Notes under the pieces: model-generated
Told to the model about the DNA's origin: nothing
Databases searched by the model: none
What the model saw: only the letters and a program-made list of their open reading frames with translations
Origin: Tetramitus jugosus
Lineage: Eukaryota; Protista; Heterolobosea
Assembly (NCBI GenBank): GCA_937625935.1
Contig: OW569387.1
Coordinates: forward strand, 1-64,000
DNA: 64,000 nucleotides
Reading direction: 5' to 3'
Position numbers and translations under genes: made by a program
Shown: one piece after another, positions 1-8,809 of the stretch
How positions within the stretch are numbered: the first letter of the stretch is position 1
How the letters are laid out: every line of letters begins with the position of its first letter

Positions 1-789
1 AAACCCAAACCCAAACCCAAACCCAAACCCAAACCCAAACCCAAACCCAAACCCAAACCCAAACCCAAACCCAAACCCAAACCCAAACCCAAACCCAAAC
101 CCAAACCCAAACCCAAACCCAAACCCAAACCCAAACCCAAACCCAAACCCAAACCCAAACCCAAACCCAAACCCAAACCCAAACCCAAACCCAAACCCAA
201 ACCCAAACCCAAACCCAAACCCAAACCCAAACCCAAACCCAAACCCAAACCCAAACCCAAACCCAAACCCAAACCCAAACCCAAACCCAAACCCAAACCC
301 AAACCCAAACCCAAACCCAAACCCAAACCCAAACCCAAACCCAAACCCAAACCCAAACCCAAACCCAAACCCAAACCCAAACCCAAACCCAAACCCAAAC
401 CCAAACCCAAACCCAAACCCAAACCCAAACCCAAACCCAAACCCAAACCCAAACCCAAACCCAAACCCAAACCCAAACCCAAACCCAAACCCAAACCCAA
501 ACCCAAACCCAAACCCAAACCCAAACCCAAACCCAAACCCAAACCCAAACCCAAACCCAAACCCAAACCCAAACCCAAACCCAAACCCAAACCCAAACCC
601 AAACCCAAACCCAAACCCAAACCCAAACCCAAACCCAAACCCAAACCCAAACCCAAACCAAAACCCAAACCCAAACCCAAACCAAAACCCAAACCCAAAC
701 CCAAACCCAAACCCAAACCCAAACCCAAACCCAAACCCAAACCCAAACCAAAACCCAAACCAAAACCAAAACCCAAACCCAAACCCAAA
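1..789 (-). repeat. Telomere, (TTTGGG)n on the G-rich strand / (CCCAAA)n on +, about 131 units
   Basis: Perfect AAACCC hexamers run from base 1 to 654. Same-length AAACCA variants occur at C>A positions 660, 684, 750, 762 and 768. The C-rich strand lies at the 5' end, as expected for a left chromosome end. Confidence 0.98.
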
Positions 790-1767
790 TTCACTTTCTT
801 TTCAAAAATCAAAAACTTCATCCAAATTCAAAACAAAATCGATCTATCATCTAAATTCTGATCAAACATGATTAATGAAAGCTCAAATCACTCATTCCAT
901 TTCTTTATCCATCTCTTGACTTTCGCTCCTTACTCTTTGTCGAAAACGGAAATTCTCTCATTCAATGCTCAACATCTGGATGTTTTTGAAGCAATATAGT
1001 GAGTCAATATATGTTGAATGAGTAATCATTCCTACTTCTCTTCAGTTATGATGGGTTGGGTCTGGGTATTCAACTCTGCATTCAAGAAAAACACAAAATT
1101 TGAGTTCTCATACTGTCAGAGTTCAAATCTCTTATAAGAAGAACTTTTGAAAAAGCTTTCCAGTCTATTACATCTATAAATCTGAATTGTCATTCAGAAA
1201 AGCTAGTAGTCTGTATTTCTGACCCTTTGGATCTTCAAGCTAGATTCAGATTTGAAACTTCACTATTTCACTGACTTACAGGATTTTAAAGCGAAAGGTC
1301 TCAATAATACATAGAATATCTGATTCTACTGTGATTCTATAATAAAAACTGCCGATTCTATTCCTAAAAACGCGAAATCAAGTCAGTCAAAATTTCAGAA
1401 ACATCAAGTCATAAGACATCAAGTCAAAAAATAGAGTTAGTAGGAAATCATGTTAAAAATGATCAAATAATGTCCCAATACTCTGATCTAAAACAAAGAA
1501 ATCATTTGTCACTAGTACGTCTTATCTCCAGTACAGAATCAAAATCGTCTAAAATCTGTTGCAGTTTTACCACTGTTGCCGATAAAAATCTGTTAAATAC
1601 AGCACAGATATATCGGCTCTACGAGCCGATAAAGCTCAAATCGAGTTGAAAACCTCGCCAATCTCTTCACCTCAACCAGCTGAAGCTCCTAGAGTAATAA
1701 AAAATCTCAAAAAAAAAATTACTATATAAGGAAATCGTTTCCTTAGGTTGGGGAATCCAGGATGTAT
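790..1767. other. Non-coding AT-rich telomere-associated cap segment between two telomeric tracts
   Basis: No recognisable coding content (only the SARAF read-through tail enters it). Bounded by the terminal telomere and the 1768-1789 tract. Contains an inverted telomere-like GGGTTGGGTCTGGG (1053-1066) and hairpins at 1611-1631, 1727-1745 and 1748-1773. Confidence 0.6.
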
Positions 1768-1789
1768 CCCCAAACCCAAACCCAACCCC
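1768..1789 (-). repeat. Interstitial telomeric tract CCCCAAACCCAAACCCAACCCC
   Basis: Same orientation as the terminal telomere. It lies exactly where SARAF homology stops. Confidence 0.85.
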
Positions 1790-1981
1790 TGTGGGTGGGA
1801 TATAACCAGAGTTTTCAGCTGTTCCTCCTACACAGGCTAGTTGGGGAACTGGGTCGGTTCGTCTAGTAGTAGTGAGTGTGTTTTTGTGGAAAGTGAGTGA
1901 AGAGATTTCACCCATGTGAATGGAGTCGGACGCAGCAAGCGTGTGAGTGACCAAGAGAAGTAATAGAATGAGTAACTTCAT
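1790..1981 (-). pseudogene. SARAF: 3'-truncated SARAF/TMEM66 (store-operated Ca2+ entry regulatory factor) N-terminus
   Basis: Signal peptide followed by ISSLTFHKNTLTTTRRTDPVPQLACVGGTA, matching the SARAF pattern LTL...TTxRRxDPIPQLxCVGGTA. After YIPPT the ORF reads into telomeric repeat (GVGFGFG) and stops at 1667. Confidence 0.85.
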
Positions 1982-2281
1982 TTCGAATTAGATTCTTCTT
2001 CTTTTAGTAAACGATAGAAAAAGAACTCACATGAATCCAGCAAGAACCGGTATCAAACTGGGGCACATGCAACAATAGCGAAGCATGAATCACCGGGTTT
2101 CAGAAAACTAACACTCTGCCTATTGGTAACATGCCACGCACTATTTTACTCAAGAAGACGCGTTGTTGTTTGAAATGACATCTGAGCGCAAATGTGACTC
2201 ATTATTTTTCTCCGAACCATTTCTGGCGCCCAGTATACTATTTCCCGTCCGGAGCTCCACAAACAACTTGCACAAAAGATG

Positions 2282-2479
2282 ACCAACTTTGATGGACCTT
2301 TACAGGGATTTCTATGTCCAATCACACATGAAGTACTGTATGATGCAACAAATACCACGAGCCGAAGAGAGGACATTCACGTACAATGGCGCAGAATTTC
2401 TGGTAGTGATACTGCCAAAAAATTAGGGATGAAAGACAACGACATTTTGGATTATATTCCAGCTGATTACTTCAAATAG
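2282..2479 (+). pseudogene. SUMO-like/ubiquitin-like domain fragment, frameshifted
   Basis: Joining two frames at ~2389 gives MKYCMMQQIPRAEERTFTYNG|RRISGSDTAKKLGMKDNDILDY, which fits the SUMO pattern YC..Q...F.F.G.RI...DT...L.M.D.D.ID. Confidence 0.6.
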
Positions 2480-2524
2480 TTGCCGCCAAAGATATTGCTA
2501 ATAATTTATGTAAAACTTGGTGAA

Positions 2525-5208
2525 TCAAGCTTGAGATATCTGTTTGATATTGTAGCAAACAAAATCCTGTTCAACGTATGGAGTTTTTTGTGAAAGAATA
2601 GCCTTGCTGTTCCAGCGACCACTGACAAACTTGCACAACTTTGATTGTGCTATCGTGTGTCCATTGTACAGTACTTGAATCACATGCTTGAGTGATTTGG
2701 TTGAGTCTTGGGAAATGTCGAATCTGAGTGCTATATATGCATAATAGATGATCTCATGATCACTAATAGCACACTTATATATTCGCCGCTTATCAACCAG
2801 AACACTCTCTTGGGTTTCCATATCTTCCATAGAACTGCACCTTCTTGCTTGCACAGAGACCTTTGTGACGTCAGGGTCAATAACTATTATTTCTCCATTC
2901 TCTGTACGAGTATAGCAACAAGCAGCAGGAATTCTACAGAACAAGGCATACATAATCCTATTATGGCTTCCATTCTCATTCACACCCTTATTTCCGGATC
3001 TTATGGTGAGAAAGTGATCATCTGGAGTTTGAAAAGCAATAGGTCTTCCATACACATCTATCGAAGGTACGATTGCTGGCGCAGATGCTGCTGTTGGAGG
3101 AGTATATATATTGGCAATCTCCCAATAAGTCAAACCTCCTCTAGGCCTCTTTACAGCTCCCTTATTTGGTTTGATTTTGATGAGTGCAATAACTAGTACG
3201 TGGCTCATTGTTGTCATATAGTTTAGCACATCAACAGGATTCTGGGAAGATGGCATCTTGCGTTTAGTTATCTGAAAGTACCCCTCCATTTCATCTATAT
3301 CTTGAGATCGTTTGGGTTTAGTAAGCTGGAAGCAACCCTCCATTTCATTTTGCTCTATAGGTCGTTTGCGAAACTGTGACGCTGGCATCCTTTGTAATGC
3401 TTCCATTTCATTAACTCTTGATGTAACTGGTTGCTCCAGAGGTATCGTGATTGGTTTTATCGGTAACTCTTTGGCTATCGCATCGAGAACAAGGGGACTC
3501 TGGCCTGACATTATCATACGCAATTCCTCTTCTTGCTGTCTTCGCAACCGTTCTTGTTGGTACCATTGCTGTCGCTTAAAAATATCCATTTGTCGTACTT
3601 GTTGTTCCTTTAATTGTTGCATCTGGAGCGAGTGCTGCTTCCGTTGCTCTTGTTCTACGCGTTTCTGAATTTCCTCCTGCTTCCTCTGCTGTTCTCTCTC
3701 AATTTCCATTTCGTTGACATTGATATTGTTGTAGGAAGAAGCAACTGGTGTCAAAGTTGGTTGTGCTGGTATAACAGATGACGTCGTTCCTACACCTTGT
3801 TCCTCCTCTGGTTTCATCGGGAGTTGAAAACGGTACATGGCAATTGCTGCCTGAACAACATCATGATTGTAATCGTTCTCGTCAAATTCATCATATTGCT
3901 GATCACCATCTTCTTGAGGATTGTACACTTGTTTCTCGACTACCTCAAGTGGTATCTTTTGTGTCCACAGAGAAGCTATTGGAGCAGAAACTGGTGTGAC
4001 TGTGGCGGTTATTATTGGTGAAGGCGTAGTTGTTGGATGACGTCCCCCCGTAGACTGTTGTTGTGCATAGCTTCCAAATTTGCTTGCTGAAACTGAGGAT
4101 GCATTCGCTACCAAAAATGTTGGCATGTTCGTACCAAGTAAATTGGTTCTAATAGAGGATGGAGTCGCAGTACTTGTTGTAGTTGTGACTGTGCTACAAT
4201 TGTTATTCTTGTTGAGTGGAACAGTGCGAGGAGTGTGTTTGTGCACATAAAGATTTGTCTGAGAGTGCTGATGATGCATAAACAATTGCTGCTGCAATTC
4301 ATGTTCTTGCATGAGCTGATGGAAACGCATTGGTAGCGTCTGGCCAGATGTAGTCTGTTTCTTTGTTGTTGATTCTGCGTCTCCATTGCTGCGTTTAGTT
4401 CATTACGATTGTACGTTACGTCTGTTGTTGAAGTCGTCGCCGGTGATGATAAAGCATCATTATTGTTTGTTGTTGTGATCGGAGTTTGTTTTGGAGGAGC
4501 GCTTGCATGTCGAGAAGGTGTCGCCGTCAACATCGCAGGTGGTGCAGGTGTTGATTTACCACCACTGCGATTTAAGGAGCATCCATCTTCTTCATCGTCA
4601 CTGATAATTGTTACTAAAGCAGTAGTTGATGTGTTCTCGTGAGTATTCTTCTGCTTCATGTCGTTATCACCACCGCTACTGGTACTAGTACTCGCAGTTG
4701 CCATAATACCAATACTGCTATTACTACTAGTCACATGATTGATACCTTTGTAATAGTATATTCTCTTTGGTGGTGGTAGTTGATGGTATATACCCGCCAT
4801 CTCAAGACGCTGTCTCTTCATCGATAATGGCATACCACCAACTATCGAGGGACTACGAGAAGAAAATTGAGAGTAATTTTCATTGTTACCACCACTGCCG
4901 CCATGTTTGCCTCCTTCGTTTTTCGTACGAATTGAAGAGAGACCAACGGGGCCAGAAGAAGTGACATGAGCATCGTCAAGATTATCAACGACAGTATTGT
5001 TGTGTTCTGTATGACTCCTGTCTCTTTTCTTTGCATCAGTCGTAAGCACGTTCATTATACTCATGTTCGAAACGTATGTATGCGATGAAGATGATGCGGT
5101 GCACGATAATAACTGCACTGGCTTGCTACTCGTTGTTTTGGCGTAAGTGAAAGTTCGCGAAGGTCCTTGCTTACTTTGTGTGTGTTCAGTTATATGCAGC
5201 CTCAACAA
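2525..5208 (-). pseudogene. Q/T/S-rich protein with C-terminal beta-rich, putative Ig-fold DNA-binding domain; one frameshift
   Basis: ORFs 4108-5208 and 2525-4330 join if one A is restored in GAA CTA AA[A] CGC (~4394-4396), reading ...NRNELKRSNGDAESTTKKQ...MRFHQ. The C-terminal ~220 aa is globular. Confidence 0.6.
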
Positions 5209-5339
5209 TCACTCTTCTTCCCTGTTATTGGACATACAATCTAGTAGGTTTACAATGAAAACAAAACGACACGTGGATCCACAACGTTACAACGAGAGAA
5301 AGAGCAAATACATTCTCTAAGTCGGTAAAAACAGTAAGG

Positions 5340-5672
5340 GTGTTTTCACCTCGGGCTCAATCTATAAAACTCACACTCCAATCTACATTTTACTCTGACA
5401 GAATCAAAGTTAATTTTTTATACAACTTGATGCTGCACAGAATCAGATGCAACTTTAGGTTCAATTCAGAAACCTCCTACTCCAGAAGTTTATCCAAGAT
5501 CCTTATTTACTTGAAAAAGTGTTGTGAGTACAACGAGGTTCCCAATAGACTGGTTGACTTTGATGACGATGTGTATGTGATCAATTTGGAAAGATATGAC
5601 ATTATCGCAAATCAATGGGTCATTGTCCATAGGACTAAACAAACAGATGAGATGCAGGACGAACAAGTATAA
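5340..5672 (+). pseudogene. Probable 3' fragment of an unknown gene
   Basis: 110-aa ORF with protein-like composition, no convincing start and no recognised family. Confidence 0.25.
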
Positions 5673-6168
5673 AAAAAGGTTTTATTACATGGTTGAAGCA
5701 GTTGGTTCAACAACATAGAATCTTTCATTCGTAAAAGTAACAGGCGAGTGATCAGTGTCCAATCTACTGATTGCAGCGAAGAGTATCTCGTCATCATACT
5801 CTTCTTGCATCAGAGCAAAAATCTTATCATACGCCTTCATGCTCTGACTCTTTGACAATTTTCACCAACTGTTCTACTAGTAAATCTACTCTAGTAGGTC
5901 TTTCCACCTTTCTTCTTTTAAGGGGATTAAAGAACTAAAGGTAGAGGTTCGTGATGGTCCTGTGATTCTTGCTATGAACATTCAAGTTTCCAACGTGCTG
6001 CACAGCTACTGGGGCTTGATCACTAGTAAGCTTGCTTTATTTCATTATATTATGCAGTGATAAACATACAGTATCTGATTATGAAGAACCAGATGATGAA
6101 CAATTTAGTGCCGAGAGAGTTTCTCTGATTTCTGAAAGAAGACCGATTGAATCACGTGTAAGAAAGCG

Positions 6169-6297
6169 TCATTTGACCAATTTGAATTTAAACATTTTGG
6201 CTACCCACTTTGTGATTGTGTTTGAATCTAAAGACCGAATCAGAGTTCTTCGTTTATCCTTCATGAGCTCTCTGTAATACTTTAACCGGTTAATGCC
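6169..6297 (-). pseudogene. Fragment of a third F-box/LRR family member
   Basis: Reads GINRLKYYRELMKDKRRTLIRS, which aligns with SLNELKFNKELMKNKKRTL (6350 gene) and GINQFKFNRLLMSNKTRKL (42878 gene). Not listed in the ORF track. Confidence 0.65.
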
Positions 6298-6349
6298 TTA
6301 GCGCTCGTACCGGTTTCCCGAAATGAATCTGGATCACTGTCATCAGTCA

Positions 6350-7093
6350 TCATCTTGTGTATTCTGCATTCAATCGCCTACCCGGATACAGAGTATGTAT
6401 TCCAGCCAAATGAGAGAATATTTCGTCTGTGATTGGAATTTGGGTACAATCACTCATATTCAGAGTGTGAATTCCAGCCAAATGAGTGATTGCTTTGCCA
6501 GTGATTGTTTCTTGAGAACAGTAATTCATGTGCAGAGTGTTAACCCCAGTCAAATGAGAGAAAGCCTTGTCTGTGATTGTCTGTTGTGTACACCTAACCA
6601 TTTGTAAAGTGTGAATTCCAGTCAAATGAGAGAAGGCCTTGTCTGTGATCGTTTCTTGAGAACAGTTACTCATATCCAGAGTATGTATTCCAGTCAAATG
6701 AGAGAATGCTTTGTCACTGACGGAGTAACAATAACTCAAATCTAAAGCATGGATGCCCTCGAGATGAACAAAATGATCATCTTTTACGCTCTTGTTAATA
6801 TATTCTTTGTTCTTGTTCAAAGAAACGTTAAACAGCGTTCCTCGACACAAACTGAAGTATTTATCAATTTCCTCTGAGGTAATATCACTCCTCAATGTTC
6901 TCTTCTTGTTCTTCATCAATTCTTTGTTGAATTTCAATTCATTCAGAGACTTGCATGTATAACTGAGGGATAACCATTCTCTCGTGTCACAAAATCCTAC
7001 AATAATTGTCAAGACATCAAAAGAGAGTGATGATGATGGTTCATTGTTTAATTTTCTTAACTTGTTTGGTGGTTCGTTTAAGGTGCGATCCAT
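6350..7093 (-). CDS. F-box + 'HLTGIHTL' leucine-rich repeat protein, 3'-truncated (probable pseudogene)
   Basis: F-box-like LSFDVLTIIVGFCDTREWLSLSYTCKSL, then 5 full 22/24-aa LRRs. A sixth repeat breaks off at GIHTLY with no cap. Paralog of 42878-44446. Confidence 0.8.
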   Translation of the reverse strand: MDRTLNEPPNKLRKLNNEPSSSLSFDVLTIIVGFCDTREWLSLSYTCKSLNELKFNKELMKNKKRTLRSDITSEEIDKYFSLCRGTLFNVSLNKNKEYINKSVKDDHFVHLEGIHALDLSYCYSVSDKAFSHLTGIHTLDMSNCSQETITDKAFSHLTGIHTLQMVRCTQQTITDKAFSHLTGVNTLHMNYCSQETITGKAITHLAGIHTLNMSDCTQIPITDEIFSHLAGIHTLYPGRRLNAEYTR

Positions 7094-7191
7094 GTGCAGC
7101 TGAAATGTGCAAATTTGAAGCGTGAGTTTGTTGGTTCTTCGAGTCACCACCAACCATTCATTCGTGCACGAATCAAAGAAAACCAAAAAAA

Positions 7192-7927
7192 ATGATGAAA
7201 TTCAGTAACAAGAGAGATAGTACCAGTAGTAGTAGTAATACAAACAGTTTGGACAGCAAGTATGCTCTGATGCAAGATGTGTTGAAACAGTTGACAGATG
7301 ACCAACTGGCAGAGTTCAGAGATGTGTTCAGTTCGACTCCTCGGGTGATGGAGAGTTGAACTCTATCGAATTCAGTCAATTATTGAAAGCTCTAGGTCAA
7401 AGTTATATAAATAATAATGAATCATTGTTACACGAGTTGGTCAAGGAGACTGATACTTCGGGCAATGGTCTCATTGACATTACAGAATTCTTAAGTCTAG
7501 TGACACGAATGATACATGAGGAGGAGTCTGTGAGGGAGGCATTTGAAGTGTTGATCAATCACTGTGGCGAATCCACCACCACCAATGGAACAATAACAAC
7601 AACAATTGTCATCTTCATTGCAGACAGTCAACAACAGCAACAACAACAATTGTCATCTTCATTTACGGTGCCCACTTCTGTCACTCCATCTCCATCTGCA
7701 GCATCACCACTACACGGCTTAGATGATGACCTGATCACAGATAATACAAGTGCAACTCAAGTTGGTAACGGTGCCAAGTATCAATGCACGCCTTCAAGAA
7801 TGCCTTGACAACAATGGGAGAGAAATTCTCAGAGGATGATATTGAAAAGATGTGGAAGGAGTTGGGGCTGGGTGAGAATGATGACTTACCTGTAGAATTA
7901 TTCATTAATTATTGTATGTCCAATTGA
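7192..7927 (+). pseudogene. Calmodulin/centrin-like EF-hand protein with two frameshifts
   Basis: Three frames give LTDDQLAEFRDVFS|FDSSGDGELNSIEF...ETDTSGNGLIDITEFL...VREAFEVL...|SMHAFKNALTTMGEKFSEDDIEKMW. Shifts at ~7331 and ~7779. Confidence 0.85.
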
Positions 7928-8041
7928 AAAGATGGTCAAGATAGTAAACAACAACTATGTATGTGTGTATGTTGTCTCTTCTCTTTATGTGGAAACATGA
8001 GTTGCACCACAAGAAGATGAGATGTTCTCATTATTTATTAT

Positions 8042-8809
8042 CTATCCATGAACAACAAATCTGTCAGACAAGAGAGCTTCAGTGGATTTACCCTTGCAGG
8101 AGACTTGTTCCAGATGGATAATTGTTGGCTTGCCTTCTTCAATATTGAACACTTTCCAGCATTGATTTGGCTTGACAATAACTTCCTTCTCATTGTCCAT
8201 ACAGCTGTATTGTGCAACTGATGCTCCTCCATGATTATAGAAAGCCAATAAGTATTGACCACCTGCGAATGTCTGTGCAGCTCGACGATCTGAAGAAGTA
8301 CTCAGAAAACTCAAATTCTCAATTACTTGTCCCATCTGTGGCTTCGTATGCAATGCAGTACCTCTCCAGACGACATCATTATATTCTCCCAACTTGTCAA
8401 TCACTTGCGATAATCTTGCAGTAAAATCGTACACCCATCCAGGTACTTCAACAGAACCTCTATATCTCAAGAAGCAGTTCAATGCAATGAAAATATTGGA
8501 ACTGTGCTCAAAATTAGTGTATGCATGAATGAGAGCAATTTCCTCCTTTGTTAGAAAACCAGGTGTTCCTTTGTTTCTGCAAGGACTTTGAAGAAAGCCC
8601 ATGTATCTTGGATTCTCATACACTGTGGCTCCATGCAAACGGTTGTTTTGGATGGCCTTCTCACATGTCGTTGTCATTGTGACAGCTGGTCTTGAGTCAG
8701 CAAGTGCATTGGTAGCTCTTCTACTTCTTCTTCTTTCACTACGGCAGTAACTATCACTGACGATGAATAGCACAAACAACAGTACAACAATAATGGTTGC
8801 TTGTTTCAT
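8042..8809 (-). CDS. Secreted NAD:arginine-type mono-ADP-ribosyltransferase (R-S-E / ART-VIP2 family)
   Basis: Signal peptide MKQATIIVVLLFVLFIVSDS, basic RRRSRR, IHAYT, LNCFLR, VVWRG (catalytic R), FLSTSS (STS motif) and NEKEV (ExE). ORF is intact. Confidence 0.9.
   Translation of the reverse strand: MKQATIIVVLLFVLFIVSDSYCRSERRRSRRATNALADSRPAVTMTTTCEKAIQNNRLHGATVYENPRYMGFLQSPCRNKGTPGFLTKEEIALIHAYTNFEHSSNIFIALNCFLRYRGSVEVPGWVYDFTARLSQVIDKLGEYNDVVWRGTALHTKPQMGQVIENLSFLSTSSDRRAAQTFAGGQYLLAFYNHGGASVAQYSCMDNEKEVIVKPNQCWKVFNIEEGKPTIIHLEQVSCKGKSTEALLSDRFVVHG

Follow-up and report, generated by a model that had tools for sequence, protein, structure and literature searches.

The window analyzed here is a stretch of 64,000 nucleotides from the heterolobosean soil amoeba Tetramitus jugosus; it forms the left end of contig C44 in an assembly of 26.35 Mb that comprises 56 contigs and 112 contig ends. 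The features found at this end are compiled in Table 1. The layout proposed in a previous sequence-only reading, namely, a telomere, an AT-rich noncoding element of about 1 kb, a short telomeric tract, and then a cut gene of the SARAF family, was borne out by the analysis. The tract, which had been placed at positions 1768 to 1789, is indeed present but was drawn one base too long. Since the wild allele described below reads ...CACAG and then continues as gene, base 1789 belongs to the gene; the true extent of the tract is 1768 to 1788, and the junction between cassette and SARAF gene lies between 1788 and 1789.

Table 1. Features at the left end of contig C44 (positions are those of the window)
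Feature	Position	Strand	Remarks
Terminal telomere, C-strand (CCCAAA)n	1..789	+	CCAAAA variant units at about 655-772, innermost 130 nt
A-type terminal cassette body, noncoding, AT-rich, 978 nt	790..1767	+	5' end of the sense strand on the telomere side, 3' end on the centromere side
Conserved 5' terminal block of the cassette	790..840	+	
Internal inverted telomere-like motif of the cassette	1053..1067	+	
Conserved structured module	1575..1660	+	With a palindromic hairpin of 8 bp (about 1612-1630)
Canonical 21-nt 3' terminal tract of the cassette	1768..1788	+	Telomere G-strand complement with one irregular AACCC unit
Truncated SARAF-family gene	1789..1981	-	Comprises codons 1 (start) to 64 and one further base
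Fortuitous read-through of the cut gene into tract and cassette	1667..1788	-	40 extra codons before the stop

Within the 63.2 kb beyond the telomere, a perfect 15-nt telomeric match occurs once, against 0.0006 expected, and the open frame at 1667..1981 (minus strand) departs from SARAF homology exactly at the tract. The cassette contains no open reading frame (ORF) of more than 59 amino acids, none that is conserved, and no helicase-like ORF. Two of its internal features stand out. (i) The inverted motif is complementary at 14 of 15 positions to the last 15 nt of the tract (1774-1788), the irregular unit included, and in the B2 and B3 copies it is an exact complement (15/15) of the A-type tract. 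It is conserved in most subfamilies, is among the best-conserved blocks of the cassette, and could serve for long-range pairing or as a protein site. (ii) The structured module folds better than shuffled sequences (z = -4.0). One pair of its hairpin covaries from GC to UA in five diverged copies, and G-U wobbles of the hairpin are found on the sense strand only; the covariation, the wobbles, and the z-score lend modest support to a sense-strand RNA. A search of window positions 780-1850 and of the 3' untranslated region (UTR) of a Penelope-like element (PLE; L047, 3380-3800) detected no hammerhead family of Rfam 15 at E values up to 10, and no other credible Rfam family emerged from scanning these two sequences.

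Distribution of the cassette family and its terminal tract

A genome search with window positions 790-1800 gave at least 62 matches, all of them subtelomeric, which fall into identity classes of 100, 97, 90, 85, and 81%. Judged by these search matches, the cassette is present at about 46 of the 112 contig ends. We identified at least 50 cassette 3' ends, 38 with the A/B-type motif (the 19 nt just before the tract) and 12 with the C-type equivalent; the reversed patterns, which served as a control, gave 0 to 1 matches per strand. All 50 of these 3' ends are subtelomeric, 26 of them on the plus strand at left ends and 24 on the minus strand at right ends, and there are no internal or inverted ones. 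When aligned, 15 full units fell into about seven subfamilies that are 80 to 86% alike, with conservation fairly even along the unit. Some ends carry identical cassettes: there were no differences in 999 nt among those of C44L (the window), C47L, C27L, and C27R and none in 1,011 nt between those of C10R and C7R, and the same holds for C19L, C12L, and C6R.

Similarity between ends invariably breaks off at the tract, and among 32 ends no two have their proximal flank in common in register. The genome search and the comparison of these 32 flanks agree with the earlier view of a portable cassette, which is found at many ends and is each time joined through a short tract to different DNA. Of the 37 end loci inspected, nearly all start with about 500 to 900 bp of telomere repeats. 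The tract persists in copies that have lost outer (5') sequence, as seen for matches that start at query positions 125, 183, 347, 372, 444, 490, and 586. A longer cassette version encoding a reverse transcriptase (RT), which the sequence-only reading had envisaged, is absent: all genome matches are at most 1 kb long and subtelomeric, save one composite variant of about 1.9 kb. An origin of the cassette as a retrocopy of telomerase RNA was ruled out, because there is no internal master copy and because the family comprises about seven diverged subfamilies. In JGI metagenome contigs, two scans, one for the 3' end of the cassette and one for its hairpin module, returned nothing.

Partial relatives of the cassette were also found. 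Mini units of roughly 210 nt at C1L (L051, 747-959) and C20R (L030, oriented 672-884) share its first 46 nt and terminate in a telomere tract, and matches to this 46-nt 5' block adjoin the telomere at C40R, C52L, and C12R as well. As a separate observation, a LINE-like non-LTR element at 2724-5720 (minus strand) of L050 (G000:C22:1-9000) points to the telomere and has its RT frame cut by a cassette tract, which makes it a second instance of coding sequence capped in this way; its upstream frames look endonuclease-like as judged by eye only.

An identical 21-mer, that of window positions 1768-1788, ends most of the A/B-type copies, each time against unrelated DNA. Its flank-side unit is irregular in most A/B-type copies, reading AACCC instead of AAACCC; in C-type copies the tract measures 16 to 30 nt. 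At C10R, the cassette 21-mer is followed by ten perfect repeats, which correspond to an old short telomere, and then by a truncated PLE. Since this same truncated PLE sits directly under a telomere of 670 bp at C3L, the cassette at C10R was added to a short old telomere. The join was made at the first base of the tract and not at the best 15-nt homology, and the irregular unit was kept.

These observations bear on how the tract arose. It had been proposed that telomerase healed a break in the SARAF gene and left the tract as a scar of 22 nt, through which an unrelated cassette was added later. Telomerase can heal breaks, and the tract is in telomere orientation. Such a scar, however, is expected to be regular and variable in length, whereas the irregular 21-mer ends most A/B copies at unrelated ends; this contradicts the proposed order of events, which we regard as very improbable. 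Because the irregular unit recurs and lies distal to perfect repeats at C10R, the tract is the cassette's own end and no telomerase scar. The alternative offered in the same reading, that the cassette itself carries the tract at its end, fits both the recurrent 21-mer and the order of elements at C10R.

Truncated SARAF gene and its intact wild allele

The gene fragment at 1808-1966 (minus strand) matches positions 3 to 59 of the 333 positions of the Pfam family PF06682 with 49.5 bits (cutoff, 30.8 bits). A protein search with the 64-residue fragment as the query retrieved P0001, a protein of 149 amino acids that is 100% identical to it over residues 1 to 64. Beyond residue 64, P0001 goes on as a genuine SARAF domain, and it scores 144.1 bits against PF06682. 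Its coding sequence is carried by L055 and L056, two Logan contigs of groundwater metagenomes, which are 99.4 to 99.6% identical to window positions 1789-4398. The SARAF gene of the window is thus really cut, as had been claimed, with its homology ending at the tract, and an intact copy exists elsewhere.

In L055, the gene runs 478 nt further; beyond it come a tract of 16 nt and a C-type cassette, the 3' end of which matches the C25L copy at 58 of 60 positions. A contig of run X4 was seen to run 538 nt beyond the junction; L056 has the same length (2,251 nt) and the same matched range. The 478-nt wild continuation has no match anywhere in the 26.35-Mb assembly. At C44L, the A-type cassette abuts the broken gene (...CACAG) with an overlap of 0 to 1 nt and possesses the full canonical tract, including the irregular unit.

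Since an intact gene cannot come from a truncated one, the state seen in the window is the derived one, and since the 478 nt are absent from this genome, the end has been cut back and recapped. On the evidence of the two alleles, the window end once consisted of the intact SARAF gene, a C-type cassette, and a telomere and has lost the C-type cap together with at least 478 nt of unique DNA; by the same comparison, the cut is evidently recent in the window lineage. We hold with high confidence that the terminal deletion is real and that it was recapped by a portable unit whose terminus is fixed.

The same data speak to the possibility that the assembly is chimeric, an internal SARAF locus having been fused to a cassette and telomere by mistake. 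In run X1, a Logan contig extends over the junction from 1785 to 1926 and shows no difference. Only 4 nt of the tract are included in this contig, which leaves some room for such an error, and run X1 may be the assembly's own source sample. However, the contig reads the cassette-side bases and not the wild continuation, this continuation is missing from all 26.35 Mb, and the same architecture recurs at about 46 ends. A chimera is consequently hardly credible.

Other SARAF sequences were considered as well. A full second paralog is located at C9:483398-484372 (212.6 bits against PF06682), and the window fragment was ruled out as a copy of it, because the two have no DNA similarity. P0002, a homologue with 66% identity, was uninformative as a guide to the ancestral end, since it is located inside a 227-kb contig without synteny to the window. 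Exact-protein lookups gave no match for the truncated ORF or for the neighboring 66-amino-acid ORF, in either the window or the wild versions.

Several side observations concern this region. Soil metatranscriptome contigs (X7 and X8) cover window positions 1796-2575 at 99.6 to 100% identity, a range that takes in the 5' portion of the truncated gene and the small ORF next to it and over which they do not tell the truncated from the intact allele. The wild groundwater strain has a 9-nt deletion (window position 2246) just upstream of the 66-amino-acid ORF at 2279..2479 and, inside this ORF, a G>T change at 2295 that is also present in both RNA runs. In L055, a second frame at about 3150-3330 comes right after the SARAF stop and encodes a Tyr/His/Pro-rich tail resembling that of P0002; this hints at a frameshift or a short intron.

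Penelope-like companions and mode of addition

The chromosome ends are head-to-tail stacks of units, each with a centromere-side tract of 13 to 40 nt (85 nt at C10R); examples of arrays or truncated copies capped by telomeric repeats are found at C20L, C20R, C50L, C35R, and C10R. In these stacks, PLE copies are interleaved with cassettes and are truncated and tailed likewise. The only PLE copy found with both frames open is that of C10R, contained in L052 (G000:C10:602121-612120), with ORFs at 6599..7567 (minus strand; 322 amino acids) and 2871..6569 (minus strand; 1,232 amino acids) and a 5' UTR of about 45 nt. ORF1 is basic/coiled, and ORF2 is an RT frame with the motifs DKNLG and YIDD and a weak RVT_1 match; a profile search detected no GIY-YIG domain in these frames, and the nearest protein-atlas clusters are mostly from rotifers. 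The 3' end of the PLE is a telomere-complement tail, and the truncated copies at C3L, C17L, C48R, and C9 point away from the telomere and have a short tail with different DNA beyond. By BLAST, cassette and PLE have nothing in common beyond the tail. The cassette was thereby ruled out as a deletion derivative of the PLE and could only be a nonautonomous rider.

As a side observation on the PLE, a frame at 1126..3414 of L047 (G000:C3:1-10000) starts from the PLE 3' UTR, reads the inter-unit telomere tract as (Lys-Pro)n, and runs on into the next, 5'-truncated PLE copy. The outer PLE copy of L047 is truncated at a PLE-internal, telomere-like 13-mer.

Another companion is a gene family with a product of 761 amino acids, which is present at many ends, mostly those without a cassette, and mostly points toward the telomere; at 6122-8404 (plus strand) of L054 (G000:C9:602712-612711), its last codons run into the unit tract. 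It has no significant Pfam match. One could imagine that its product is a Cre-like recombinase and that a cassette circle with a single tract is put into telomere repeats by site-specific recombination. In addition to the presence of this family at many ends, a head-to-tail joint (position 1788 to 790) in contigs of run X1 agrees with such a scheme, since it may reflect either a circle or a tandem. Arrays like the ones at C35R and C50L nonetheless account for the tandem joint, the scheme needs a telomeric target site, which the SARAF junction does not have, the cassette has no sequence similarity to the C9R unit that holds the 761-amino-acid gene, and PF00589 gave nothing in the genome. We therefore judge this route to be improbable. 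The cassette also carries no array of 39-bp palindromes and forms a separate family.

The telomere bases provide information on copying between ends. CCAAAA units occur in the innermost telomere only at ends with identical cassettes, the other 19 ends examined being pure CCCAAA there; the pattern of the window is common to C47L, C27L, and C27R, and C10R and C7R have an identical variant pattern over about 30 units. Such shared variants imply that DNA-level copying included the telomere base along with the cassette or that the RNA starts inside the telomere.

Subtelomere recombination is common in eukaryotes, and the cassette may be no more than a Y'-like repeat moved as DNA only, by break-induced replication, gene conversion, or an end-joined terminal fragment. 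Copying from a donor to an end predicts what is seen in the groups of two to four ends, namely, 0 differences per 1 kb and common innermost-telomere variants. Four arguments nevertheless speak against movement as DNA only and leave it as a possible but less favored explanation. (i) At the SARAF break, overlap with the tract amounts to no more than 1 nt, but the first base of the tract is precisely where the join was made. (ii) The join at C10R bypasses the best 15-nt homology, with the irregular unit kept. (iii) The donor flank was never carried along at the 32 ends. (iv) If the donor were a duplex, there would be no reason for copying to begin at precisely this base. Recombination may account for no more than the later homogenization.

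The joins at C44L and C10R call for a free-ended template ending in ...AACCC. An RNA 3' end copied by an RT would fit both joins, and an intact candidate RT is encoded in the same arrays; from this, we infer an RNA intermediate and the source of the RT. The head-to-tail arrays with their 5'-truncated, tailed copies are likewise of a retroelement style, and the end design has a precedent in endonuclease-deficient PLEs (PMC8557442, PMC6431247). We propose, with confidence that is about evenly balanced between acceptance and doubt, that the cassette is a gene-less, telomere-specific "terminal addition" element that spreads by RNA-templated end-on addition where a telomere is worn down or broken off. 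The cassette would be transcribed, and the free 3' end of the chromosome would prime reverse transcription at the 3' terminus of the RNA, with 0 to 3 nt of pairing. The RT would act in trans and come from the endonuclease-less PLE of the same arrays. A new telomere would then be built on the outer end, and settled copies would later be copied or homogenized between ends by recombination. We conclude that two processes are at work, that is, end-on addition from a free-ended template, followed by DNA-level copying between ends.

Several findings count against the RNA route. No RNA intermediate was seen: in two soil metatranscriptomes, the neighboring genes are represented at 100% identity, but of the 50-copy cassette there was a single piece of 262 nt that is 93% alike. 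Furthermore, no PLE sequence is shared beyond the tail, there is no hammerhead, and the telomere-base variants are shared between ends. A more far-reaching version of terminal addition, which appears unlikely at present, is a system of homology-independent chromosome healing in which a telomerase-related RT copies a noncoding RNA with a telomere-complement tail onto any free DNA end. If this were true, the RNA would perhaps begin inside the telomere and supply a ready-made subtelomere and a telomere seed in one step, and the system would represent a backup capping mechanism beside telomerase that stabilizes about 56 small chromosomes.

Relationship to known telomeric elements

The two near-identical strains represent one chromosome end before and after a terminal deletion, with a different family member capping each state, and are thus rare natural evidence of present-day end-on addition to nontelomeric breaks. 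The system is small (1 kb with a fixed 21-nt tail), so that RNA-templated and recombinational end repair could be separated experimentally. We found no description of telomere units in Tetramitus or Naegleria in the literature searched.

The closest parallels are the endonuclease-deficient PLEs (Athena, Coprina, and Terminons), which are located only at termini, have a reverse-complement telomeric stretch at the 3' end, and all point the same way, with this end facing the centromere; their 5'-truncated copies are capped by repeats, and they form mixed head-to-tail arrays (PMC8557442, PMC6431247). The cassette is like them in its confinement to termini (50 of 50), single orientation, telomeric 3' stretch, truncated capped copies, and mixed arrays. 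It differs in that it has no ORF and hence no Penelope-type RT, whereas the C10R PLE does have an RT without GIY-YIG. In known telomeric PLEs, a hammerhead ribozyme fold is reported to lie directly before the telomeric stretch (PMC6431247). Unlike these, neither the cassette nor the local PLE has a hammerhead before its tail, simple hairpins being present, and the local element is thus a telomeric PLE without the hammerhead motif. Further differences from Athena, Coprina, and Terminon elements are the heterolobosean amoeba host, the TTTGGG telomeres, and the direct joining of the tail to nontelomeric DNA.

Drosophila HeT-A, the "healing transposon" (with TART and TAHRE; PMC5537684), resembles the cassette in that it has no RT of its own and is added end-on to receding or broken ends, the RT being presumably lent in both cases by a telomeric partner element. 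HeT-A is, however, a non-LTR element of 6 kb with poly(A) and gag, and it replaces telomerase (PMC5537684). In T. jugosus, in contrast, telomerase repeats cap every end, and the tail of the cassette is a telomere complement and not poly(A).

Like the Y' elements of yeast, the cassette is a subtelomeric unit found at some ends, with an internal telomeric tract on its proximal side, is sometimes tandem, and is apparently homogenized between ends. Y' elements measure 5 to 7 kb, encode a helicase, and have internal tracts of variable length. The cassette, in contrast, measures 1 kb, is gene-less, and has a fixed 21-mer that begins at the same base. MoTeRs integrate within arrays of telomere repeats, and MoTeR2, the short form, has the same termini as MoTeR1, which encodes an RT. 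Unlike MoTeR2, the cassette resembles the local RT element in its tail alone. The likeness to the MoTeRs of Magnaporthe is that of telomere-embedded retroelements that destabilize chromosome ends (bioRxiv 10.1101/845669).

The earlier description of the cassette as an undescribed end-capping element is therefore correct in part: the noncoding family was not found in the literature searched, but its architecture is known from telomeric PLEs, HeT-A, and Y'. What is new is the cassette family and the comparison with a wild intact allele, and these add a 1-kb form without genes, and the Heterolobosea as hosts, to the known range of telomere-attaching elements.
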